A DNA stretch of 64,000 bases from Cyanophora paradoxa CCMP329 (GCA_004431415.1 QPMI01000582.1:100362-164361); one strand, 5' to 3'. Counted from the stretch's first letter, positions 1,444-60,061 are shown. Numbers and translations are program-made. The notes: a model not told the origin generated them from the letters alone.

Positions 1444-4400
1444 CTAGACGCCGGCGCTGCCGGCGGACTCGAGGGAGGCGCGGCGGTTGGCGGCGCCGCT
1501 GTCGCGGGAGTAGGAGGGGCGGCGGCCGTCCCGGGACTGAGTGGGGCGGAGGGCGTCGCTGGGGGCCGAGGAGAGGGTGTCGGCGAGGTCCTCCTCCTCG
1601 TCCCCCTCCTCCATCGTGCCGTGCAGGCGCCGCAGCTCGACGACGGCGCGCCGGATGGAGACAACGAGGGCCACCCACGAGTACATCCGCTCCGCCGCCA
1701 CCGACCCCTTCTCCCGCACCTGCGGGCCCCCCGGGGCGCGTGAGCTGCGGGGCGGGGCGGGGCGGGGCGGGGGTGGCGGGGGGCGGGGGACCTCCTCGGC
1801 GGTGAGGCCCTTCATCTCGGCGTCGACGCGGCGGAACTTGGCCTTCTTCTGCTTCACCGTCGGGTCGTACGCCGCGATCCTCGGCTTCAGCTCGTCGCTC
1901 ACCAGCTGCCCGGCCCCCCCGCCCCGCGTCGGCCCGAGCGCGCGCGGGCGAGCGGCGGGGACGGCTGACCTGGCGGATCTTCTTCCAGTCGTCGACGTCG
2001 TGGGGCTTGAAGTCGAGGAGGTAGAAGAGGCCGCTCGGCCCCCATGTTCGCCTCCTCCACCATGAGGTACCCGAAGGCGCGGTTGCCGAGGTGGCCCCCC
2101 GTGACGGGCACGATCGTCTTGTCCGCCGCCTCCTCCCCCTTGGGGACCTTGTCCGTGAAGGCGAAGGCGACGGGGGCGTTGACGAGGCTCTTGAGGACGC
2201 CGATCGCCCCCTCGAGCACCAGCATGCTCCGCCGCCGCCGCTCGGCCCGCTCGTGCGCCGCCCCGAGGCCCTTGGCCATCGCCGCGAAGAAGTCGAGGTC
2301 CCAGGGGGTGAAGCCGGCCTTGCCGTGGTCCCCGCCCAGCCCGTCCATCGCCACCACCCCGATCACCTCCCCCTCCTTGTCCACCATCGGGAGGCACACG
2401 TAGGGCCCGTCCGCCCCGTCCGCCCCCGCCGGCCCCAGGTAGTGCACGGCCGGCTCGGCGCGCACGGAGGGGACGTGCATCGGCTGCGGGGCGGCGCCGG
2501 GCTTGACGGCCGCCGTCGCCTGCCAGGTGACCCCCGTGCCGGGGGGCACGACCTGCCCGACCAGCAGCGCGTCCTGCTCGGCCGGCCCCGCGGCGACGTA
2601 CTGGAGGGCGCCGCCCTGCGCGGGGTCCACGATGGCGACGTAGGCGGCGGTGGCGGTCGTGTGCGCGAGCAGCGCGTCGATGACGAGCTGGTGGAGGGGG
2701 TTCAGCTGCCCGTGGCCCTCGTTGTCCGCGATGTACGCCTCCAGCGCGCGCGCCGCCGCGTGCGTCGCGTCCTCCACCGCCGGCGCCAGCTGCTCCGCCA
2801 GCATCAGGATCATGTCCACCTCGCCCTCCCCGAAGGCCTCCCCGTCCTTGTACACGCTGACCGCCCCGACGCAGCCGCGGCCCTTGCCCGTGGCGTCCTT
2901 GAGGGGGACGGTCATGACGGCGCCGCGGGGCGGGCGGCCGAAGTAGGCGTTCTGCCCGGCCGCCTCGAGGTCGGGCACGAGCGTGTACTTCTCCCGCGCG
3001 ATCGCGTCAAACTCCGAGGGCGGCGGCGCCGCCGCCTCCCCCTCGCCCTCCCCGGCCCCCGGCCGCCGCTGCGTCTGGCCGGCCTCCAGCCCCAGCAGCG
3101 CCTTGGCGCCCTCGTCCGCCGCGTACAGCCTGCGCCGCGCCCCGCCGGCCCGTGAGCAGGGCGGGGGCGGGTGGAGGGGCGGGGGAGGGGGCGGGGCGGG
3201 GGCGCCTGAGCTGGAAGGGGTGGTCCTGGAGGGGGACCCACATGGCGCGCGCCGCCGGGCAGAAGGGCCGCACCACCTCCATGAACGCCGCGTACATCTG
3301 CCGCCCCGCCCCGCCCCCTCGACCCCGCCCCGCCCCGCCCCGGGGCGGGGGTCGGGGCGGGCGCGGACGGTGGCGGGGGCGGCCTTCTTCATGACGAGCT
3401 CCTTGACGGCCTGCACGGCGAGGGTGCGCGCCCCCTCGGCGTGCGCCGTCGCCAGCCCCGCCGCGCACAGCCCCAGCTGCTCCCCCAGCTGCTGCAGCCG
3501 CTGCACGTCCTCCGTCGCCAGCGCCGCCGGCGCCGCCGCCTGCTGCGTCGCGCTCGGGTGCGGCGAGACGGCCGGGAGCCGGCGGGGGCGCCGCCGGCCC
3601 CGCGGCGGCGGCCGAGGCGGGCCGGGCGAGGTTCTCCCCGCCCAGGACGCCGACGACGTCCTTGGAGCCCGGCACGCGGATGGGCGCCGCGAAGACGACC
3701 CCGCGGCGCCCGTCCGCCTCCTCCGCCTCCGCCTGCGCCGGCTTCCCCTGCGCGCCCGCCACGCCCCGTCAGCCCGCGCGAGCCGGTCGCCCCGGCGCGG
3801 CCCGCGCACGGTGTCGATGGCGGCGAAGAGCGGGGCGAGGCGGGTGGAGCCCGGGGGCTCGGCGCGGGCGACGCGGGTGCCGGGGACGTGGCGGCGTCGG
3901 CGGAGAAGACGCAGTCGAGGGCCTCCACGGGGGCGCCCTCCTCGCGGCCCGCCGGCGCCGCCTCGCAGAGGTACACGAAGCCGCCCGAGCCCTTCCCGAT
4001 GCGCCGCGCCGCTTCCGTCGCCACGCTCCGCAGCTCCGCCAGCGCCGCCTCGTAGCTGCCGCCCCCCCCGTTGCGCCGGGGGCCGCGGGCCGGCGCGCGC
4101 GGGGCCGCACCTGTCGCCCGGCTTGAAGCGGGAGACGATGGCCTGCAGCGTCTGCAGCGCCGTCTCTGCGTACCCCGCGTCAGCAGAGGCTCTGGCGAGG
4201 CGCGGCGCAGGAGCGGGGCGGCGGGGCGCGCCGACAGCCTTGATCTCGCGCTGGCGCCGCATGAACGCCTCGTCGCGCTCCCGCCGCGCCCGCTCCGCCT
4301 CCTCCTTCTCCCGCTTCCGCCGCTCCGCGAGATCGTGCCTGCGCGCCGGCGCGGGCACCCCGCCTGAGCGCCCCGCAGGCGCCGCCCCCGCCGGCATGCA

Positions 4401-5303
4401 GCGGCGCGCACTTCTCCTTGTCCTCGGCGGCCTTGCGGGCCTTCTCCTCTTCCTCGGCCTTGCGCTTCTCGGCCTCGGCCATCTGGCGCAGCTCCTCCTC
4501 GCGCCGCTCCCGCTCCTCCTCCTCCCTCTTCCGCTCCGCCTCCAGCCGCTCCTCCTCCTTGCGCCGCTCCTCCTCCTCGATGCGCAGCCGCTCCTGCCGC
4601 TCCTCCTCCGCCCGCCGCGCCAGCTCCTCCACCATCTTCTGCCGCGCCGCCCGCTCGGCTTCTTCCCGCACCCTTGCCTCCTGCGCCGGCGTCAGGCACC
4701 AGCCGGCACCCCCGGCGGGGCGGGCACGGGCGCGCCTCGGCGGCCCGCTCGTCGGCGGCCTGCTTCTCGGCCCAGGAGTGATACTTGGGCTTCGGGTTGT
4801 GCCGCATGAGGTACGCGGCTAGCCAGTGCAGAGGCTCGAAGTGTCGCTTGTCCATGTACGCGGGCGCCGACGCCGGCCGGTCCCGCTGCGGTACCTTCGA
4901 CTTGATCATTCCGGGGTGGGCGCTCGTCGGACGCGCCCAGATCGGCGTCGGCTTGGCCCCTGCGGTCGGCACGATGCCCGCCCCATCCACCGTCTTCAGC
5001 AGCTGGGCTATCGCGGGCAGGAGCGTCGGGAATAGCTGCTGCTCCATGAAGGCAAGGGAGCCCGGTGGCAGGTCAGGATTCGCTGCTACAGCTGCAATCG
5101 CCGCTGCCGGAAGTGCCGCTGCCGGGGCCCAGCCAGTTAGAGTCGTTCGGGGAGCACGCGCAGGAGGGAAGGGACGCACCAAGAGCGGCCTGCACTTCGA
5201 TAGCTTTTGCAGCTGAAGAGGGCCTAGAGCCCACCTGCACGGGCGCCCCACCGCTGCTGGGCCGCGAGCTTGGGCCCGACGGCGGGCGACTGCCCGAGCT
5301 CAT
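1444..5303 (-). CDS. EFCAB5-like putative ciliary protein (N-terminal DPY-30/RIIa-like motif, coiled coil, GAF-like domains), multi-exon
   Basis: Spliced translation contains FMEQQLFPTLLPAIAQLL...FEPLHWLAAYLMRHNP, an E/R-rich coiled coil (4430-4650), GAF-like segments (AVMTVPLKDATG...VGAVSVYK; YVCLPMVDKEGEVIGVVAMD) and C-terminal RIAAYDPT...VREKGSVAAERMYSWVALV, resembling EFCAB5 from memory. Exon boundaries approximate. Confidence 0.6.
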
Positions 5304-46195: not shown

Positions 46196-46984
46196 CCGGG
46201 CCCGCGGCCCGCCCCGCCTGGCTCGAGCTCCGGGATCCCCCCCGCCCCGCTCGAACTCCGGATCCCCGTGCGCGCCTGGCCCCCTCCTGCTGCAGCTGCA
46301 GGGCCGGCACTAGTTCTAGTTATAGTTCTAGTACTGCTAGCGCTTGCCTCTCCAATTTCATTCAAGACATCGGCCGCAGCCGCGGCACTGCGGCACCGTA
46401 AACGTATACGTATACGTACCAGCACTAGTATACTAGTGCTGCAGCTGGCATGCGCACGCGTACGTTCGATCCGGATCCTGGCGCGGCCATGGGCCGGCCC
46501 GGCCGGGCCCCAGGGGCGCGCGGGGGCACGCCGTGTGACGTGCGCATGCACTGCAGCTGACGGCCGGGCGAGCTTAGCCTGCGCATGCAAGCCATTAACT
46601 GTATAACTAGTTTATAATACTACCTGTTCACTTCACTACCGGCTAGTGCTGGGTTCAGTCAGGCTCCAACCCTGACCCAGGTATTCGTGAACTCAGCCGT
46701 CTGCGTGCAGTTGCGTGGGATTTGGGGTACATCGGTTCTGGGAAGGAAAGAGCCTTCAAGCAGAAGCAGTGCGAACGTAGGTACCGGGCGATAATTTAGA
46801 ATTAGAAATTAAGGCTGGAGTCGGGAAACCGCCGACCGTCAAAAACCGGTTCGGTGCTTCGTCCACGTCCCGGCGCCGCCCGCGCGGCGCCCCGGGCCCA
46901 TGCAGGCATGCGCATGCGCAGCAGCGCAGGCCGGGCGCCCGGCCGGCGCGGCGGCGCCCCGGCCCCCGGGCCCCGGGCCCCGGC

Positions 46985-47494
46985 TAGAGCTGTGCTCGCT
47001 GGGGGGGGGCCGGGCCCAGCGGCCGCTATAGCGCCGCGAGCGGCACCCGTCGCTGGCCCGTCGCTCAGCTGGGGGTACCGCCAAAACCTGACGAAAAAAT
47101 GCTGAAAACCGATCGAAAACCTATCTGTTCCGCTAAGTTTGTTCGTACAAGCTCTTATAATTAAGCCGCAAACTCAGGTTTAATGCTTGGTTTTGCGAGC
47201 CATGCGTCGATTTCAGCGAGATTGAGGCCAGCCGCAGGCGGCTTGCAGGCTGCTTTTGGGCGAAACGGGGCGTCTGGATGCTTGAAAACCGTTGAACAGT
47301 CGGAATTTAGCAAGATTGATCGGCTACGCCGACCTACGTCGACCTTCAGATGAGAAAAAAGCGGGGTGGGGCTTTTTTTGGCGCCTGTCGGCCACAAAAA
47401 ACGCCGAGCGAGGAGGGGTCGCTGGCGGAAAACGCCGAGCGTAGCGGCCTCTGGGACCTCGCGAGCGAAGCGACCACCAGCGACCACAGCCCTA
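46985..47494. mobile_element. 510-bp hAT-family MITE inserted in the left TIR of the long-TIR element
   Basis: TIRs TAGAGCTGTGCTCGCTGG and CCAGCGACCACAGCCCTA (16/18); perfect 8-bp TSD GCCCCGGC at 46977-46984 and 47495-47502; absent from the right arm. Confidence 0.93.
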
Positions 47495-48559
47495 GCCCCG
47501 GCCCCCGGCCGGGGCCGGCCGCCGCGCCGGGCCCCGGCCCCGGGGCCCGGGCCCGGCCGGGCCCGGCCCGGGCCCACGGCCGCGGCCGCGGCCCGGCCGG
47601 TCCGGTCTGGCCGGCCAAGCCTGGCCGCAAGTCAAGCCGGGCCCCAGAAGCCCGGGCCGGGCCGGTGCCGGCTGGCCGGCTTGGCGCTACCACCCGTACC
47701 CGGGGAGCATGCCAGGAAGATCGACCTGGGAGAAATGAATCGCTTTCTTGTTCTTCAAGCGAGAGGGGGGGGGGAAGAGAGCACCGGGGGGTGCCGCGAT
47801 TCGAAACCTGTGCCTGGAGCTCGGCTCCAAGGGCGCGCGTGGGCTCGGCGCTAGCAGCACTCGCTTTGAATCGGCGCGCATGCTCTCCAGTTCCAGTCTC
47901 GACGAAGCCCTCCGTCCTTTTCGCCCCGCGGTCGGCTCGCCTTGTCACGGCGTTTGGCACGCAGACGACAGGCACGGGGCCGTGCGCACGATCCCCGAAC
48001 TTCATGTACGCTATAGATGCGTAGTTGCGCGTCCGGAGCGGCCGCGCCTTGCCGTTTTCCCGGGCCCAGAAGCCGCGCACGAGCCAGCGATCACCGCTAC
48101 GTGCGCCCCGGTCGCTCATGACCTCAGCCGCTTGCCAACGCACTCTCCGCAGAGAGCTCTTTGCGTGGCGAGCTCCGTTCTCCATGGCGCGCTCCCCCCT
48201 TGCCCTGCGCACAATCTGTGCGTTTGTTGACAGCCGGGCCTCCTCATTCACCGCTACAGCCTGGGTCTGGAGCACGCGCACTCGACATATGCAATGTACG
48301 TTCTCTGCGGAGCGTCGTCCTGCGCCGCCCTCGCAGCTCCGTGTGCCGCGCGCCGCTGACGTCCCAAAGCAGGTCCATTCGTGCTCCTGGCTCACGGATA
48401 CGCGCACGTGGACTGACTGGGCCAGCGCGACCTTCTAACAGCATGCTAAATCTCGTTCGGGGGTCTTCCCAGCCCTCGCCGCCGCCTGCGCCGAGCGCCG
48501 CTGACGGCCTCCTACATGCTGCAGATCGAATCGTGCTGCGACGGCTGCACGAGGCCTAG

Positions 48560-48779
48560 CTTCACCTGCACAGCACGCCGGTGCCATTAAGCCCGCGCCG
48601 AGGGCGCCGCTCCATCGGCCGATGCCCAGGCCGCGCTGGGTCGCAGGGCAAGCGCAGGCCGCTCGATCTCGCGCCAACGCTCTCGCCTCGCCTACGGCCT
48701 CACGGCGGGGCGCGCCAGACCCCTTCAGGGGGGTACAGAGGTGCGCCCCGAGCCCCTAGAGGGGGACGGCGGGGGGGTG

Positions 48780-48818
<39 letters not shown>

Positions 48819-51328
48819 CGAGAGAGGAGAGGCGGGGGAGGGGGCGGAGACGGGAGCCTTGCCGTGCTGATGCGTCCCGATTTGCGATGCAGCTCTCGGG
48901 CCCTGTATCGGCGCGGCGAGCGGCAAGAGGCTTCCCCTGCACAGCACGCCGGTGCGCCTGGGCCCGCGCCGGGGGCGCCGCCCCATCGGCCGATGCGAAG
49001 GCTGCGCTGGGTCGCAGGGCGAGCGCAGGCCGCTCGATCTCGCACCGACGCTCTCGCCTCGCCTACGGCCTCACGGCGGGGCGCGCCAGATCCCTTCAGG
49101 GGGGTACAGAGGTGCGCCCCGAGCCCCTAGAGGGGGACGGCGGGCGGGTAGGGGGGAGGGGGCGGGGAGGGGGAGGGGGGCGAGAGAGGAGAGGCGGGGG
49201 AGGGGGCGGAGACGGGAGCCTTGCCGTGCTGATGCGTCCCGATTTGCGCTGCAGCTCTCGGGCCCTGTATCGGCGCGGCGAGCGGCAAGAGGCTTCCCCT
49301 GCACAGCACGCCGGTGCGCCTGGGCCCGCGCCGGGGGCGCCGCCCCATCGGCCGATGCGAAGGCTGCGCTGGGTCGCAGGGCGAGCGCAGGCCGCTCGAT
49401 CTCGCGCTGACGCTCTCGCCTCGCCTACGGCCTCACGGCGGGGCGCGCCAGATCCCTTCAGGGGGGTACAGAGGTGCGCCCCGAGCCCCTAGAGGGGGAC
49501 GGCGGGGGGGTGGGGGGGGGGGGGGGGGGCGGGGGGGGGGGGGGGGCGAGAGAGGAGAGGCGGGGGAGGGGGCGGAGACGGGAGCCTTGCCGTGCTGATG
49601 CGTCCCTATTTGCGCTGCAGCTCTCGGGCCCTGTATCGGCGCGGCGAGCGGCAAGAGGCTTCCCCTGCACAGCACGCCGGTGCGCCTGGGCCCGCGCCGG
49701 GGGCGCCGGCGCCGCCCCATCGGCCGATGCGAAGGCTGCGCTGGGTCGCAGGGCGAGCGCAGGCCGCGCGATCTCGCGCCGACGCTCTCGCCTCGCCTAC
49801 GGCCTCACGGCGGGGCGCGCCAGATCCCTTCAGGGGGGTACAGAGGTGCGCCCCGAGCCCCTAGAGGGGGACGGCGGGCGGGTAAGGGGGGGAGGGGGCG
49901 GGGAGGGGGAAGGGGGGCGAGAGAGGAGATTCGGGGGAGGGGGCGGAGACGGGAGCCTTGCCGTGCTGATGCGTCCCGATTTGCGCTGCAGCTCTCGGGC
50001 CCTGTATCGGCGCGGCGAGCGGCAAGAGGCTTCCCCTGCACAGCACGGCGGTGCGCCTGGGCCCGCGCCGGGGGCGCCGCCCCATCGGCCGATGCGAAGG
50101 CTGCGCTGGGTCGCAGGGCGAGCGCAGGCCGCTCGATCTCGCGCCGACGCTCTCGCCTCGCCTACGGCCTCACGGCGGGGCGCGCCAGATCCCTTCAGGG
50201 GGGTACAGAGGTGCGCCTCGAGCCCCTAGAGGGGGACGGCGGGCGGGGAAGGGGGGGAGGGGGCGGGGAGGGGGAGGGGGGCGAGAGAGGAGAGGCGGGG
50301 AGGGGGCGGAGACGGGAGCCTTGCCGTGCTGATGCGTCCCGATTTGCGCTGCAGCTCTCGGGCCCTGTATCGGCGCGGCGAGCGGCAAGAGGCTTCCCCT
50401 GCACAGCACGCCGGTGCGCCTGGGCCCGCGCCGGGGGCGCCGCCCCATCGGCCGATGCGAAGACTGCGCTGGGTCGCAGGGCGAGCGCAGGCCGCGCGAT
50501 CTCGCGCCGACGCTCTCGCCTCGCCTACGGCCTCACGGCGGGGCGCGCCAGATCCCTTCAGGGGGGTACAGAGGTGCGCCCCGAGCCCCTAGAGGGGGAC
50601 GGCGGGGGGGTGTTGGGGGGGGGGGGGGGGGGGGGAGGGGAGGGGGGCGAGAGAGGAGAGGCGGGGAGGGGGCGGAGACGGGAGCCTTGCCGTGCTGATG
50701 CTTCCCTATTTGCGCTGCAGCTCTCGGGCCCTGTATCGGCGCGGCGAGCGGCAAGAGGCTTCCCCTGCACAGCACGCCGGTGCGCCTGGGCCCGCGCCGG
50801 GGGCGCCGCCCCATCGGCCGATGCGAAGGCTGCGCTGGGTCGCAGGGCGAGCGCAGGCCGCTCGATCTCGCGCCGACGCTCTCGCCTCGCCTACGGCCTC
50901 ACGGCGGGGCGCGCCAGATCCCTTCAGGGGGTACAGAGGTGCGCCCCGAGCCCCTAGAGGAGACGGCGGGCGGGGAAGGGGGGGAGGGGCGGGGAGGGGG
51001 GAGGGGGGCGAGAGAGGAGAGGCGGGGGAGGGGGCGGAGAGGGGAGCCTTGCCGTGCTGATGCGTCCCGATTTGCGCTGCAGCTCTCGGGCCCTGTATCG
51101 GCGCGGCGAGCGGCAAGAGGCTTCCCCTGCACAGCACGCCGGTGCGCCTGGGCCCGCGCCGGGGGCGCCGCCCCATCGGCCGATGCGAAGACTGCGCTGG
51201 GTCGCAGGGCGAGCGCAGGCCGCGCGATCTCGCGCCGACGCTCTCGCCTCGCCTACGGCCTCACGGCGGGCGCGCCAGATCCCTTCAGGGGGGTACAGAG
51301 GTGCGCCCGAGCCCCTAGAGGGGGACGG

Positions 51329-51363
<35 letters not shown>

Positions 51364-52038
51364 CGGAGGGAGGGGGCGAGAGAGGAGAGGCGGGGAGGGG
51401 CGGAGACGGGAGCCTTGCCGTGCTGATGCGTCCCGATTTGTGCTGCAGCTCTCGGGCCCTGTATCGGCGTGGCGAGTGGCAAGAGGCTTCCCCTGCACAG
51501 CACGCCGGTGCGCCTGGGCCCGCGCCGGGGGCGCCGCCCCATCGGCCGATGCGAAGGCTGCGCTGGGTCGCAGGGCGCCGCGGCGAGCGCAGGCCGCTCG
51601 ATCTCGCGCCGACGCTCTCGCCTCGCCTACGGCCTCACGGCGGGGCGCGCCAGATCCCTTCAGGGGGGTACAGAGGTGCGCCCCGAGCCCCTAGAGGGGG
51701 ACGGCGGGCGGGTAGGAGGGAGGGGGCGGGGAGGGGGAGGGGGGCGAGAGAGGAGAGGCGGGGGAGGGGGCGGAGACGGGAGCCTTGCCGTGCTGATGCG
51801 TCCCTATTTGCGCTGCAGCTCTCGGGCCCTGTATCGGCGCGGCGAGCGGCAAGAGGCTTCCCCTGCACAGCACGCCGGTGCGCCTGGGCCCGCGCCGGGG
51901 GCGCCGCCCCATCGGCCGATGCGAAGGCTGCGCTGGGTCGCAGGGCGAGCGCAGGCCGCTCGATCTCGCGCTGACGCTCTCGCCTCGCCTACGGCCTCAC
52001 GGCGGGGCGCGCCAGATCCCTTCAGGGGGGTACAGAGG
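48560..52038. repeat. Tandem array of about 366-bp units, about 9.5 copies, each with a long G tract
   Basis: Marker CAGCACG(C/G)CGGTGC at 48571, 48942, 49304, 49670, 50041, 50404, 50770, 51132, 51498, 51868 (period 362-371). Confidence 0.97.
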
Positions 52039-53797
52039 GGGTTAGCCGGGGGCAAGCTGCCCCCGCCGCCCCTCGAACCGCGTACCCCCGGTACGCGGCC
52101 CGGGCCCGACCCCCCACCCACTGACGCCCTGCGAGGGCACTACCAGGGCACGTCGGCGGGTAGATGATCTAGATCTAAATTAAAGACATCGCGGTCCTTA
52201 CTGATGTATTCGCTGGGTCCCACCCTCGCTGCCCCGGCCCCGCCGCGCGCCCCTAGGCCTCGAACCTCGAACCACGAGCAGAAAGGGCGATCGGGCCTCA
52301 TTATCCAGAGCTGCGGACCTGAAGCGCTTTAAAACGCATATAGGTTTCTGTTTCAAAGCGTTTGCACGTGTACCGTATACGTATGCGAATGATGCCTATG
52401 ACTAGTACTGTTCTTTTTTTCCCCGTGATGCGTCGTATATTCAGGAACACCGCAGTACAGACTCCTACCTACTCCTTAGGTGGCCAAATATACGTATACT
52501 AGCCTGCCCAGGGCTCCTGCCGTCACTGGCCCCGACTCCCCAGGGCTTCAGACCCAGCAGACAGAGAGGTGGGAAGGGCGCTGAGAGCACCCGCGCAGTG
52601 ATCATGAGTAGCCGACGGAGGACGCCCCCCACAGGTGATAATCTACGATGAGATTGGGCGAGGCCAAGGTTTCGAATTCGTCGGGTGGGCAGCCGGGTTC
52701 GGCATACGGAAGGAGTGAGAGGGGGTGGCGCATTGGGGGGTGGGACGCATGGGGACGGACCGGAGCTCGAGACACCATGGGCGCCGGCAAAGGGCTGGAG
52801 GCCTAGGGGCGGGGCGCGGGGCTGGGGCAACTAGGCGAGCGAGAGAGGGGTGAAGGGGGGCCTGGGTTCGGGCATTCGCTGACGTCGACGCTGATGGTGG
52901 GGGAGGCGGGGGTTCAGGATCGATATCTGGCCATGGGGCTGCGATGGAGGGCGAGGTACGGTGGGCCCGGCGACGGCGTGAGGGGCGGAGTTGGGCGGGA
53001 GGTGGCGAGCTGGAGGGGGCAATTAATTGCAAGGGAGGTTCTCGGGGCGGGGCAGCGGCTAAGGGCGCAGGCTGGGTTCGGGAACGCGTGCGCACGGTTT
53101 AGGCATGCGCAAATGGGCCCTTAAGCTTCTTGTAGTCGACGCAGATCTAGAGGAGCTATCGTTGCCTGCTGTGTGTCGGTGCTATCGAGCTGCAGCTTAA
53201 CCTGCAGCACACGTGCAGCGTCGATATCTTGAACGCTAGTGCTGCAGTCCGGCCGCGGATCCGGATCCTCTGGTCAGAATATTAATGTCGTACCAAAACA
53301 TGCTAGCACAACGTTATGTAGCCTTTTCAACGACTGTTAATGATATGTCTAGATAGTATAGCTGTTGTTCGTCCAGGAGCCTGCATGTGCAAGATGTTGT
53401 CTTGCATCGCACCTGTGCAGCTGCTGAGCCTTCCTTCAACTTTGAATTTCTGTTGACGAGGTGTAGTTCTATGACAGCTAAATATATCGTTTGAACGCCC
53501 TTTAAAGAGCTTTCAGAATATGTAAAGATGTCGGGGTTCAAAATTGCTCTTTTTCGAAGAAGAGCCAACGAGATGTTCCGATGCGACAAAATCCTCAACA
53601 TGTCGAATCACTCAGTGATCATGACCAGCTGACTCATCAAACCCGAGCCATGGCGACCAGTCTAGAAAAGCATAAAAGATGAATATAAAGCTTAAAAGAA
53701 GCCTGATATCATAGTATATCACTCATTGATTGAAATCACGTGCGCCTGGGACATGGGGTGCATGATCATGATGAAGAGGCGAGAAGAGCTCTTCAAA

Positions 53798-54257
53798 GAT
53801 GGGCGTCGGGGCCTGGAAGCTGCGGAGACTGGCGAGCCGCTGTCCAAACACCATGGGGCCTCTACGGACGCAATTGCTAGGGGGCCGGGTGCTTTGCATA
53901 TTGCTCGAGGGGTACGATGGCGCCTGAGAGACGGGGGAGCATGGAGGGGCGGGAGGGCTCTTGGAGATGGGCGTCGGGCTGGACGCTGCGGAGACTGGCG
54001 GGCCGCTGTCCAAACACCATGGGGCCTCTACGGACGCAATTGCTAGGGGGCCGGGTGCTTTGCATATTGCTCGAGGGTACGATGGCGCCTGAGAGACGGG
54101 GAGCATGGAGGGCGGGAGGGGCTCTTTGGAGATGGGCGTCGGGGCCTGGACGCTGCGGAGACTGGCGAGCCGCTGTGCAGACGGCACAGGGTCTCTACGG
54201 ACGCAATTGCTAGGGGGCCGGGTGCTTAGCATATTGCTCGAGGGGTACGATGGCGCT
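53798..54257. repeat. Tandem array of about 166-bp units, about 2.8 copies
   Basis: GATGGGCGTCGGG unit starts at 53798, 53966 and 54131. Confidence 0.93.
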
Positions 54258-54369
54258 TGACACTGGGAGATCATGTGCTGGTACGCCGACTGAGTAATAG
54301 TGCTTCGCCGACCTTTAGTACACCGACGAGGTCGGTGTTTTCCCACGGGCGATTACTCCGAGCATGTCA

Positions 54370-54437
54370 GTGTAATAGGGTCGGTGTAATAGGGGTCGGT
54401 GTAATAGGGGTCGGTGTAATAGAGGTCGGTGTAATAG
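54370..54437. repeat. 15-bp minisatellite GTGTAATAGGGGTCG, about 4.6 copies
   Basis: Directly visible; preceded by the perfect hairpin ACACCGAC-GAG-GTCGGTGT (54320-54338), which contains the same GTCGGTGT motif. Confidence 0.93.
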
Positions 54438-54767
54438 CGAATGTTGCAAACTGGCCCGCTCGTTCTTTTCATTCCAGCAGCGTGTCGCTATTATAGAGCT
54501 TTGTTTTAATGTTTAAATTCAATCACACATATAGCTGAATAAGTTTGGCTAGAATAAGCTGTCACACAGAATACCTCCTGCGTAGATCTAGCTAAAGTGC
54601 ATATATATATCTGGGAGAGGGTAACGCAGGTCCGAAGAAGAGACGAATGTGTCCCGCAGCTCGAACCTTGAGCTGGTTGGCACTGGCTGGAACTGCGGAC
54701 TTTGTTGAACGGATTGGCGCACTCTCCAGAAGTTGACGGATTGGTGCAATCATTCTGCGAAGGAGAA

Positions 54768-55749
54768 GCTGCGCATTTAATCGAATTTCCAGCTTGATAT
54801 TGATTAGTAGATACGGATAAACGCACCCGGCGGGCCAGGGTCGCCCTCTAAGGCATCCCGAACGAGCCTCGCGCCCTCGCCCCCCTCAGTGACTTGGACG
54901 GAGGGCCCTCGGCGACCTGCAGCGGGCTGCACATTTAATCGAATTTCCAGCTTGATATTGATTAGCAGATACGGATAAACGCACCCGGCGGGCCAGGGTC
55001 GCCCTCTAAGGCATCCCGAACGAGCCTCGCGCCCTCGCCCCCTCAGTGACTTGGACGGAGGGCCCTCGGCGACCTGCAGCGGGCTGCACATTTAATCGAA
55101 TTTCCAGCTTGATATTGATTAGCAGATACGGATAAACGCACCCGGCGGCCAGGGTCGCCCTCTAAGGCATCCCGAACGAGCCTCGCGCCCTCGCCCCCTC
55201 AGTGACTTGGACGGAGGGCCCTCGGCGACCTGCAGCGGGCTGCACATTTAATCGAATTTCAGCTTGATATTGATTAGTAGGTACGGATAAACGCACCGGC
55301 GGGCCAGGGTCGCCCTCTAAGGCATCCCGAACGAGCCTCGTGCCCTCACCCCCTCAGTGACTTGGACGGAGGGCCCTCGGCGACCTGCAGCGGGCTGCAC
55401 ATTTAATCGAATTTCCAGCTTGATATTGATTAGTAGATACGGATGAACGCACCGGCGGGCCAGGGTCGCCCTCGAAGGCATCCCGAACGAGCCTCGCGCC
55501 CTCCCCCCCTCAGTGACTTGGACGGAGGGCCTCGGCGACCTGCAGCGGGCTGCACATTTAATCGACTTTTCAGCTTGATATTGATTAGTAGATACGGATA
55601 AACGCACCCGGCGGGCCAGGGTCGCCCTCGAAGGCATCCCGAACGAGCCTCGCGCCCTCGCCCCCTCAGTGACTTGGATGGATCCGAAGGGCCCTCGGCG
55701 ACCTGCAGCGGGCTGCGCATTTAAACGACTTTTCAGCTTGATAGTGATT
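54768..55749. repeat. Tandem array of about 157-bp units, six copies plus partial
   Basis: GCTGC(A/G)CATTTAA unit starts at 54768, 54926, 55083, 55239, 55394, 55549 and 55712. Confidence 0.96.
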
Positions 55750-56050
55750 CGGGCGAGATTGGGCAAGCTGTCGCGTGCGATATTAGTGTGTCTAATCGGG
55801 CGCGCGGGAAGCCCGTGCGGAGTGCAAGCTCGGCAGGCGGGAATGGCGAGTGTCACTGCTGTCGTCGCTAAGATCCAACTCACTGGGTGTACCCGTCCAG
55901 ATACGGCGTACCCCGACACAAATACAAGTGACCGCGGCGCTCTAACTAGCCTAGGCGCCGTCGGTCCAGCAGCTCGAAGGCTGACGTGATCTAGAGCCCT
56001 AGCGGCTCACATGTAAATGAGCATCCGCTATAATGTCGGATGCGACACAA

Positions 56051-56615
56051 GCCACACCTGGCGGAGAGTGCCTCACGCAGGCCGGACTCCGGAGGACCTG
56101 CACGCTTACAATCAATCCGAGAGATTTGAATCGGGCGAGGGCCTGGCGCCCCCACGACGCGCTCTCGTGCTTGAGTGTACATGTGTTTGGGGAATATTAA
56201 TACTCGGTCAAGATCGGGCGAGCCGCACCTGGCATTGCCAAGTTGAGGACCTCAGGCGGGGGACCTGCAAGTTCACAATCAATCCCGAGAGAATAATCGA
56301 GCGAGGGCCTGGCTCCCCCACGACGCGCTTTCGCGCTCGATTTAGTTTGAGAACACAATTCAATAATTGGGTGAGATCGGGCGAGCCACACCGGGCGGAG
56401 AGTGCCTCACGCAGGCCGGACTCCGGAGGACCTGCACGCTTACAATCAATCGAGAGATTTGAATCGGGCGAGGGCCTGGCGCCCCCACGACGCGCCCTCG
56501 TGCTTGAGTGTACATGTGTTTGGGGAATATTAATACTCGGTCAAGATCGGGCGAGCCGCACCTGGCATTGCCAAGTTGAGGACCTCAGGCGGGGACCTGC
56601 AAGTTCACAATCAAT
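56051..56615. repeat. Higher-order repeat: about 334-bp dimer of diverged ~167-bp A/B monomers (A-B-A-partial B)
   Basis: GCC(A/G)CACC(T/G)GGC monomer starts at about 56051, 56222, 56385 and 56555; copies 1 and 3, and copies 2 and 4, are near-identical. Confidence 0.9.
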
Positions 56616-59528
56616 TTCGAGTGCTCTTTTCCCCCCCCCTCTCGCTTGAAGAACAAGAAAGCGATTCATTTCTCCCAGGTCGATCTTCCTGGCATGCTCC
56701 CCGGGTACGGGTGGTAGCGCCAAGCCGGCCAGCCGGCACCGGCCCGGCCCGGGCTTCTGGGGCCCGGCTTGGCTTGCGGCCAGGCTTGGCCGGCCAGACC
56801 GGACCGGCCGGGCCGCGGCCGCGGCCGTGGGCCCGGGCGGGCCGGCCGGGCCGGGCCCGGCCCCGGGCCCGGGGCCGGGGCGCCGCGCGCCGGCCGGGCG
56901 CCCGGCCTGCGCTGCTGCGCATGCGCATGCGCATGACTGCATGGGCCCGGGCGCCGCGCGGGCGGGCCGGCGCCGGCGCCGCCGGGACGTGGACGAAGCA
57001 CCGAACCGGTTTTTGACGGTCGGCGGTTTCCCGACTCCAGCCTTAATTTCTAATTCTAAATTATCGCCCGGTACCTACGTTCGCACTGCTTCTGCCTGAA
57101 GGCTCTTTCCTTCCCAGATCCGATGTACCCCGAATCCACGCACTGCATTTTTCCAGCTAAGTATGCGAACCCGACCCAGTCGCTCAGCCCCCCTGACTGT
57201 GACTGAATCAGTCAACCGAGGTTCGCTACGAGTTATGGGCCTTAGGCGCAGTTTCCGCCATACAAACTTTTTCCGAGTCAAGTCTATTGACCAAACTCGG
57301 CGAGTTTTTAGACTGGGAACACCTTCCAAGTCAAATTAGTACCGGAATTATCAGATTTGTTGCATTGGCTAAAAGATTTGGCAATGTTTGTGATATATAG
57401 CTAGCACGTAATAGTATACTTTAACTCAGCGTTTTTTGCTTTTCAGCATGGAAATGTATATCCATTCGCAAATCCCATTGGCGTGAGTCAAGTCTCCCAG
57501 GCCAGGATCTTGCCAAATCTCTGCCAAATCTCTGCCACTCCCGAGTTCGCCCCACAGGGCCAGGAAACTTTGCTCCTAGCGCCCAACTCGTAACGGTTCA
57601 GTCAGGCTACCGTGCAAAAACTGAGGAAAATGACCCGGAAATGACCCAGATGCGATCCATCGATATCTAAGTTGCCAAGCACAGTGCGCGGGCAGTAGGG
57701 ACTCTAGGGAGTGATTAGGCGAGCAAAGCTTAAGAACACTTGTGAAAGGAATTCGGCCCCGTTAGCCTCGTTGGCGCGGCGGTTTTGTTCAGATTTCGTT
57801 GTTTTTCTGGAGGTAAGCGACAGAAGATCCTTTTTAGGTCGATCCACGTCGAGCTTCAGATGGAAAAAGCCACAGGGGGCACGCTCCAGCAGGGTTTTGT
57901 ATGGACTGAAGAACCTCAGTCGGCCAATTTGTTGACTCAGTCGGGTCAGTCAGACCTCTGACTTTGACTGACAGTGACTGAACCCAGCCCTACTAGACCG
58001 CCCAGCTGGAATTTGAAACTCGGTACCGGTCACCGGAGGCTGCCACTGGCACAGCACGCCGGCCCGAGTCAGCTCCTGCCGGTGGCTGCATATATTTAAC
58101 AAATATATGCAGTTAACCGTATATAACCAAATATATAATTCTTTTAATCAAGACTTGCGTGACCTCACGGTCTTTGTCATTGGCCAGGCGCACGTGTGCC
58201 TCACGTGTGTCGCCTATCAGCACTACCCCCCGCCTACGTTCGCCCAAACTTTCCGCCCGGCTAGCTCGCTCCGCTCGCTCCAGCGCTCGGCCTGCGCGCG
58301 CTCCGCGTGCTCGGGAAGCATGTTCGACGCTCTCGCTCGCTTGCCGCCGCCCGCCGCAGACAAACGCTCCTCGAAGGCGATCCTGCGGCGCGCGTCTTCC
58401 GTCAACGCTCTTCCCGTGCTTTAGATGCGTGTACCAAGCTCTAGACGGGCCGGGGCGCCAGGCCTGCCGCTGGATCGGTCCCGGTCGTTCGAATCGCGGT
58501 TTCCGCCCATCCGGCGCGGTTTCGCCGCCCCGGTGCCGCTCGTGCTCCTGGGTGCGATTCTCCATCCTTGTGCATGCATTAGAACACCGCTGCATGCCCA
58601 GAAAGAGTGCCGCCCACGCGAAAGAAAGGTCGAGGTGCCTTGGACACGGGCCACACGGGCGGGCGCTACATACAAGGGGGGGCTGGGCGAGCGGTGCCAG
58701 AAGCTAGTAAACATGCCTACGAACGCCTCGGAATGGCGCTGCGTGCGATTCCGGCCCGGGGCCGCCGCCGAGGTGAAGGACCGCGCCTGGGTGGTGGTGG
58801 TGGTCCATCAGGCGGCGGCGAAATGGTCGCAGAAGAGAACGGAAAGGAAGTATAGCACCTGTACATCAAGAAACGACGATGCGCAGCCGGCGAGCGAGCC
58901 CCCCGTCGTCAGGCGGCCGAGGAGCAGGGAAGTACTGCAGGCGCGGTTAGCAACAGCAACAGATTCACACGAGCGATTTGCCTACCATGCAAGGGAGAGC
59001 TTCAAAACCTTGATGCGCATAGGGAAGAACGCTTGCTGTGCATGGGAATTGCACACTTGCGGCGGGTCAGGAACTGTTCAAAAACCTCGGTCAATGGCAC
59101 AAGTCGCCCCAGGGCGGGTAGCGCGGGCGCTCCAAGGCGCACCCGCATGATCGCATATACTTTCTTATGTCAGCGCACCATGTCCCGAGGCCGCAGTGAG
59201 GCGCTCCTCGCATCGGATGTTGCTGCTCTGTCTCGCGCGGGTCAACTACGGAATCGCGGGCATGGCGAATGTGGTTTCTGATATCGATAGCGTACCTGTA
59301 ACCGAGCTGGGCTCGTCCGGCGCAAATCGCTCGTGTAGCCGTGGTAACTGCCGACTAACTGCCGTAACCGCCCAGGTCTAGGGGACGCTCGGCCCGCCAA
59401 GGCATCCTTCTGGGTGCGCTAACAGTGATGCTGGTGCGCTTCGCCGCTCAGGCTGCTCAGGCCGCTCGCTGCCACGCACAAGGTCGCCGGGGTACGAGCG
59501 CGAACGAGAACTCGCCGTACCCACAAAG

Positions 59529-60061
59529 TTGAGTTGGAATTTGCATACTACGGCGAGTCGAGTCAAAAAGTCCGAGTCAAAAACTCGAGCGATTTGCCTG
59601 ATTGGTCAAAAAGGACTCGGAATTACTCAATCCACCGGCGCAGGTCCTGTTGGACCGGCGTGCTGTGTGGTAAGTTTTGAACATATTAGGGACAGTCCGA
59701 AGTACGGCTGGTGCGAGTCTAAAGGGAAAGAAAAAAGCAAAATTCTGCCAGCAATTTGGCTGACCAGTGCTGTAATTCAGTCATAAAAAAATGCACTTTG
59801 CCAGCCCGCATAGTACCGGGCCTCCATGTACCCGTGCATGGTCCGAACACAGCCAAAACATCGCTGGGGTACGTCAAAACATTTGAGTTGAAATCGCTTA
59901 CTACGGCGAGTCGAGTCCAAACGCCCCAGCCTAAAACTCGGGTGACTTGGTGATTGGTTATTTAAACCTATAGCTAGGCCACGAATACCTGCGCTCGCAA
60001 TTCCGATTGGCCAGCTAGCAGGGGGGGGGGGTGCGGGGGGGGCGGAGCCCCCCCTGCTTGT
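59529..60061 (+). mobile_element. Possible 3' end of a non-autonomous Helitron-like element with an internal ~80-bp direct repeat
   Basis: Imperfect direct repeat 59529-59608 and 59883-59960 (core TACTACGGCGAGTCGAGTC); GC hairpin GGGGGGGC-GGA-GCCCCCCC followed by TGCTTG|T at about 60036-60061; 5' end not found. Confidence 0.35.

Follow-up and report, generated by a model that had tools for sequence, protein, structure and literature searches.

A 64,000-nucleotide stretch of nuclear DNA from the glaucophyte Cyanophora paradoxa CCMP329 (contig tig00021244, hereafter the window) contains a structure of 10,492 bp at positions 46681-57172. It consists of two inverted arms lying 8.8 kb apart, each adjoined on its outer side by the heptamer GACCCAG, and of an interior with four tandem arrays and a minisatellite. 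This element may well descend from a cut-and-paste (class II) DNA transposon of non-autonomous type and foldback-like architecture, of which it would be a relic. Its anatomy, with an inverted arm at either end, a 7-bp direct repeat immediately outside them, and tandem arrays but no coding content between them, fits a non-autonomous transposon with long terminal inverted repeats (TIRs). Furthermore, signs of other mobile DNA are found at the same place, namely a 512-bp insert in one of the arms and an outer inverted pair with a 17/18 match, and these support a transposon origin.

Inverted arms and flanking heptamer

The outer parts of the element comprise the following features; MITE stands for miniature inverted-repeat transposable element.

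46674-46680, no strand: GACCCAG, left copy, putative target-site duplication (TSD), immediately preceding the left arm
46681-47784, plus strand: left inverted arm, 1104 bp including a nested insert, with a GC-rich microsatellite-like middle
46984-47495, no strand: MITE-like insertion of 512 bp, present in the left arm only, with CTAG at both ends, TIRs of ~15-19 nt and CCCCGG on both sides
56621-57172, minus strand: right inverted arm, 552 bp
57173-57179, no strand: GACCCAG, right copy, adjoining the right arm

Inverted arms of about 550 bp were already described in the initial annotation of this DNA. This length is correct for the right arm, while the left arm measures 1104 bp because the 512-bp MITE-like element is inserted in it. 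By blastn and a repeat search, the arm cores (46706-46979 and 47487-47784 versus 57147-56621) are 98-99% identical. When the arms were aligned globally without the nested insert, 155/158 positions were identical in the outer core (46706-46865) and 181/183 in the inner core (47601-47784). The microsatellite-like middle carries indels and differs in length between the arms, and the identity breaks off sharply at the inner edge (47784/56621). Terminal inverted repeats are thus present at both ends, as in class II TIR transposons.

The flanking GACCCAG repeat, also seen in the initial annotation, abuts both ends of the element, and each copy lies 25 nt from the adjacent high-identity core. It does not extend further, as CT precedes the left copy and CC the right one, and arm sequence follows the left copy and TC the right one. 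Identity of a 7-mer at fixed boundaries has a chance of 3.8e-4; if ~40 symmetric registers are allowed, the estimate rises to ~0.015 (0.01-0.02). Without gaps, the terminal 30 nt of the two arms match at 17/30 positions, compared to a mean of 7.85 under the null model (P(≥18) = 8e-5).

Part of this pattern would also be expected from a local, immobile inverted duplication, in which a repair or inversion event (e.g. by staggered breaks) copied ~530 bp across a repeat-rich segment and the heptamer is due to chance or to a common motif. Duplications of the staggered-break type likewise consist of two near-identical, single-copy inverted units of a few hundred bp with sharp ends. In line with this, the high-identity cores end sharply, the outer 25 nt are poorly matched, and the structure is single-copy in all collections searched. 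The heptamer falls within a locally recurrent CTGGGT-type motif, and GACCCAG occurs ~10 times within the 64 kb outside satellite A, the first of the internal arrays. Nevertheless, the staggered-break model predicts neither a flanking direct repeat nor residual similarity outside the duplicated block, and both are seen here, if weakly. The heptamers are placed symmetrically, exactly 25 nt outside the cores, and the intervening match is above chance, the joint chance being estimated at <1e-3. We therefore consider a local duplication unlikely, though it deserves appreciable weight.

Two independent insertions of one dispersed ~530-bp repeat in opposite orientation around a satellite-rich stretch are a further possibility, the repeat being a solo long terminal repeat (LTR), a short interspersed nuclear element (SINE) or a MITE-like unit with ends of the TG...CA type. 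Indeed, the high-identity unit starts with TGCAG and ends with GAGCA(C) in both arms, and other small insertions have gathered at the locus. Against such an origin, which we regard as improbable, reading of the sequence revealed no direct repeat flanking either arm singly; the heptamer links the two outer ends instead, and no third copy of the unit was found in the 64 kb.

Several observations weigh against the transposon reading. The outermost 25 nt (46681-46705 versus 57172-57148) match at 12 of 25 positions, so that the part that a transposase should bind is the least alike part of the arms. On the minus strand, the heptamer together with the right terminus (CTGGGTC GGGTTCG...) resembles CTGGGTTCGG. 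This motif recurs within the element and its flanks, and the putative TSD could thus be part of a recurrent motif; the duplication is seen in a single copy of the element, and its heptamer overlaps the locally recurrent motif. A Pfam search detected no transposase domain within the open reading frames (ORFs) of the element, and neither the arms nor other parts of the element were found in the remaining 53 kb of the window. A single copy was seen in the window and in metagenome, viral and protein collections, with neither a second insertion nor an empty site. Finally, the gene model tig00021244_g19597 annotated within the element has no paralogue in the predicted proteome.

Tandem arrays between the arms

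The interior of the element is composed as follows.

47785-48558, no strand: unique non-coding segment, including the start codon (47880) of gene model tig00021244_g19597
48559-52038, plus strand: satellite A, ~366 bp x 9.5, 94-96% identity, 76% GC, GC skew +0.19
52039-53770, no strand: spacer of 1.7 kb, 47-69% GC, without tandem array, with two exact copies of CTGGGTTCGG
53771-54260, plus strand: satellite B, ~167 bp x 2.9, ~90% identity
54366-54437, plus strand: minisatellite, 15 bp x 4.9
54768-55749, plus strand: satellite C, ~157 bp x 6.2, ~96% identity
56050-56615, plus strand: satellite D, 334-bp dimer x 1.7, extending as far as the inner end of the right arm

The arrays together make up 5,590 of the 10,492 bp of the element, or 53%. 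As stated in the initial annotation, there are four unrelated arrays (periods of 366, 167, 157 and 167/334 bp) besides the 15-bp minisatellite; no similarity among them was detected by blastn with a word size of 7 or by nhmmer at E≤1. Satellite D is 98% identical to itself at an offset of 334 and 76% identical at 167. Array monomers were not found elsewhere in the 64-kb window (blastn; nhmmer, E≤1), and no other array with a Tandem Repeats Finder (TRF) score ≥150 is present in positions 1-46000. All large repeats of the window are confined to the element locus.

Each monomer of satellite A contains one G-rich block, and poly-G and GAGGGG variants of it alternate. All homopolymer runs of at least 15 nt in the window consist of G, are 16-37 nt long and lie in alternate satellite A monomers (48782, 49512, 49531, 50615, 51330). 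As the assembly is from PacBio reads, the lengths given for these runs may not be trustworthy. Low complexity is all that links the G-rich part of satellite A with another G-rich tract at 1245-1363. In the spacer, an inverted pair of 43 nt (52224-52266 / 52793-52835) is 81% complementary over a distance of 526 nt, with no duplication visible at its flanks. We also considered whether this G-rich spacer contains a fifth, degenerate array and rejected the idea, as TRF finds none even at a score of 30.

We also considered an artefact of the PacBio/Canu contig, either a chimeric join or collapsed repeats, and give it very little credence. The assembly relies on RSII long reads after correction with Illumina data (PMC6704402), and sequencing is difficult in arrays of 76% GC and in G runs of up to 37 nt. 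However, substitutions, the length of the microsatellite and the 512-bp insert all distinguish one arm from the other, and a duplication artefact would produce none of these. The arms are separated by 8.8 kb with ordered, distinct arrays, every one of which is below the typical read length.

A role as functional chromatin domain had been proposed as well, on the grounds that the monomers are near nucleosome length. In this case the arrays would nucleate heterochromatin or form a small regional centromere between inverted repeats. Satellite-based centromeres bind CENH3 and are expected at about one such domain per chromosome. The monomers do measure 157-366 bp, and the locus is a 14-kb stretch of lower GC without codon periodicity amid gene-dense DNA. 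Yet the arrays span only 5.6 kb and belong to four unrelated families, the lower GC is normal for non-coding DNA in the window, and a literature search retrieved no paper on Cyanophora centromeres. We rate this as the least probable of the explanations considered, and the nucleosome-length, heterochromatin and centromere ideas find no basis in the sequence. A special G-quadruplex domain was likewise rejected, since G-quadruplex density in the element is ordinary and equals the window average, with only the strand bias of satellite A being unusual.

Coding and RNA content of the element

No product is encoded by the element, and no function for the cell is evident. Fifteen of its ORFs were searched singly, and at E≤1 Pfam returned nothing but low-complexity noise for them. 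Accordingly, the initial statement that no transposase, integrase, polB or capsid motif is recognisable was confirmed for the ORFs of the element. GC periodicity by codon position is absent from 46.35 to 58 kb. Neither Rfam nor tRNA (ARAGORN) matches were obtained, and an origin from a ribosomal DNA spacer, a tRNA/SINE or a structured RNA was rejected for this reason. A herpesvirus-like or other viral origin, prompted by the high GC content and the inverted repeats, was rejected because the window harbours intron-bearing C. paradoxa genes and the ORFs of the element are without domains.

Two further classes of large elements were compared with this content. Polinton/Maverick elements carry genes for a protein-primed polymerase B, an integrase, capsid proteins and packaging, and produce a 6-bp TSD. 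The element differs from them and from polinton-like viruses, as its ORFs have no Pfam domain and its flanking repeat has 7 bp. DIRS-like retrotransposons possess inverted LTRs, a tyrosine recombinase and a reverse transcriptase and leave no TSD, whereas the element has no coding content and is flanked by a direct repeat.

The gene model tig00021244_g19597.t1 (P0002, 390 aa) was mapped back onto the window and covers 47880-51971 on the plus strand. It is composed of satellite A monomers, each contributing two 'exons', which gives a 51-residue repeat. GC at codon positions 1/2/3 of these exons is 0.71/0.70/0.78, unlike real exons of C. paradoxa. Among 1.84 billion protein representatives no relative was found, only the protein itself being returned; two weak matches (P0003, P0004) are unrelated tandem-repeat proteins and were discarded. 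A satellite A ORF used as query likewise led to this gene model only. The model is probably spurious, a satellite annotated as a gene. Since in at least one published gene model a satellite is thus read as a 51-residue-repeat protein, masking of this locus is advisable for annotation and comparative proteomics.

Comparison with known elements

Foldback and Mutator elements generate TSDs of 8-11 bp, and the arms of Foldback are built of short tandem subrepeats. The element shares with them long inverted termini and the frequent lack of coding capacity. Nevertheless, the assignment to Mutator/Foldback made in the initial annotation is not supported: the 7-bp direct repeat does not fit 8-11 bp. 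The arrays are located in the middle domain and not within the arms. Unlike the TIRs of Foldback and of Tetris, a foldback element discussed below, the arms contain a single GC-rich microsatellite-like stretch and are otherwise largely unique in sequence.

Galileo and Tetris come closest among the described elements. In its architecture, the element can be likened to Galileo, a Foldback-like member of the P superfamily in Drosophila with TIRs of up to ~1.2 kb, 7-bp TSDs and abundant transposase-less copies consisting of two TIRs (PMC3573991). The length of Galileo TIRs changes by recruitment of adjacent sequence and by tandem repeats, and extended TIRs have been described (PMC3573991). Both have very long TIRs without a transposase, and the 7-bp direct repeat falls within the 7-8 bp that characterise TSDs of the P superfamily. 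In contrast to the element, Galileo also has autonomous copies with a P-type transposase containing a THAP domain, its tandem repeats reside inside the TIRs and not, as the four large arrays here, between the arms, and its host is an insect and not a glaucophyte alga.

Tetris of Drosophila virilis is a non-autonomous, modular foldback element with long TIRs and a non-coding middle domain, of which three structurally complete copies were reported (PMC4079207). Its internal tandem repeats of ~220 bp have seeded satellites and also form satellite-like arrays, with 610 repeats on 69 contigs (PMC4079207). Long TIRs, a non-coding middle domain and tandem repeats are common to both elements. However, Tetris has TSDs of 8-10 bp and is assigned to Mutator, compared to 7 bp here. 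Furthermore, it involves one repeat family that is part of the TIRs and whose dispersal was shown, whereas the element has four families between the arms at the one known locus.

By its anatomy, the element most likely belongs to the foldback-type DNA transposons, a known kind, and is now dead; the genome around it has been little charted. Primary plastids are found in three lineages, among them the glaucophytes, whose mobile DNA is to our knowledge almost undescribed. A characterised element with long TIRs and a 7-bp TSD would provide a first handle on a family of glaucophyte DNA transposons, and it would be a further instance of satellites arising from foldback-type transposons, a connection that is already known. 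For transposon specialists this would come as no surprise, unless joint dispersal of all four arrays were shown.

Nested insert, outer repeats and proposed history

The 512-bp MITE-like element is missing from the right arm, as seen from the sequence and from the arm alignment. Judged from its presence in one arm, its insertion is probably later than the duplication of the arms. A 35-nt motif inside it is 83% identical to 57835-57868, to the right of the element. A second set of inverted termini encloses the whole element plus 0.8 kb:

46643-46660, plus strand: outer inverted pair, left member, 17/18 match, GCTGGGTTCAGTCA core, CTAG just outside
57975-57992, minus strand: outer inverted pair, right member, 17/18 match

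Based on this pair and the adjacent CTAG, the 10.5-kb element may be nested in a short-TIR element with a body at 57180-57996, which may have been its insertion target. A MITE was rebuilt across the insertion site by joining 46636-46680 to the sequence from 57180 onward, and only the 18-nt outer termini paired significantly. As the similarity stops at the junction, the outer pair is no proof of an empty site.

Further repeats tie the locus together. The 10-mer CTGGGTTCRG, a motif derived from the locus itself, occurs four times in the window, always at the element locus. Every monomer of satellite A begins with the 13-mer CACAGCACGCCGG. Outside the element, this 13-mer is also the start of an inverted pair of ~36 nt (58050-58085 / 59632-59667), with its two occurrences at 58050 and 59655. 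In addition, ~27 nt at 58036-58062 match the monomer junction of satellite A except for two substitutions and a gap of 1 nt. These matches hint that satellite A might derive from the end of another repeat.

For a transposon of this kind we infer the following course from the sequence, including transposition itself, the order of events and growth of the arrays in place. A transposase encoded elsewhere would have recognised the imperfect terminal ~30 nt, and insertion by a 7-bp staggered cut would have duplicated GACCCAG. The target would have been an already repeat-rich intergenic island, possibly within another short-TIR element. Short, imperfect original termini and a later inverted duplication or conversion tract best account for the drop in identity from the cores to the outer 25 nt. 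In this view, the ~500-bp part of the arms with 98-99% identity would have arisen later, when the inverted repeat was extended or homogenised through gene conversion or inverted duplication. Slippage or unequal exchange may have expanded unrelated internal sequences into the four arrays where they now lie, and the MITE-like element would have landed in the left arm afterwards.

Search for further copies

Besides the window itself, external collections were searched for relatives. Two 28-30-mers of the arms had no exact match in metagenome contigs, and one of them was also without match in viral contigs. The ORF at the junction of the inner right arm and satellite D (56541-56942, minus strand) had no protein match, not even to itself. 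The protein collection does not contain raw ORFs of the C. paradoxa genome, so that this blank is uninformative on copy number. The failure to find a further copy carries little weight, as it is only an absence of evidence in collections that do not include the remaining Cyanophora genome at the DNA level.

The initial annotation had proposed that the structure is a non-autonomous vehicle of satellites. The anatomy of a long-TIR element supports the non-autonomous part of this proposal, whereas dispersal of satellites is unsupported, no second copy having been found. That glaucophytes should possess a family of mobile, transposase-less long-TIR vehicles, each spreading unrelated satellites in gene-dense DNA and seeding heterochromatic or centromere-like domains, appears highly doubtful to us.

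Genomic setting

The C. paradoxa genome has a GC content of 67.6% and 29.4% repeats, and unclassified repeats constitute 11.5% of the genome (PMC6704402). Contig names beginning with tig000 and Augustus gene identifiers are those of the long-read C. paradoxa assembly, and the identifiers are also found in bioRxiv 10.1101/674762. Two predicted proteins of the assembly (EukProt tig00021244_g19579.t1 and tig00021244_g19597.t1) map to the window at 100% identity, the first at ~2-5 kb and the second at ~48 kb; their identifier numbers are 18 apart. The window is therefore glaucophyte nuclear DNA, and a human, viral or bacterial source does not apply.

An ORF at 1899-4397 on the minus strand encodes GAF domains and is 100% identical to tig00021244_g19579.t1. 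The pieces of this GAF-domain gene (1049 aa) were placed at 2046-5119 on the minus strand as separate exons. GC at codon positions 1/2/3 of the GAF-domain exon is 0.78/0.49/1.00, and exons of the window have a third-position GC of ~1.0. This extreme codon bias extends across the whole window.

In 2-kb steps the GC content of the window ranges from 58 to 84%. The element is situated in a 14-kb intergenic island in which several kinds of repeats have accumulated, surrounded by gene-dense DNA. This stretch is without exon-like codon periodicity, and its GC content is 47-60% over much of 52-60 kb, lower GC being usual for the non-coding DNA of the window.

The intergenic DNA on the right-hand side also contains a direct repeat of 60 nt (59537-59596 / 59890-59949) with 80% identity at a distance of 353 nt. 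Motifs rich in CGAGTC/GACTCG that are related to this repeat are present at 57270-57310.

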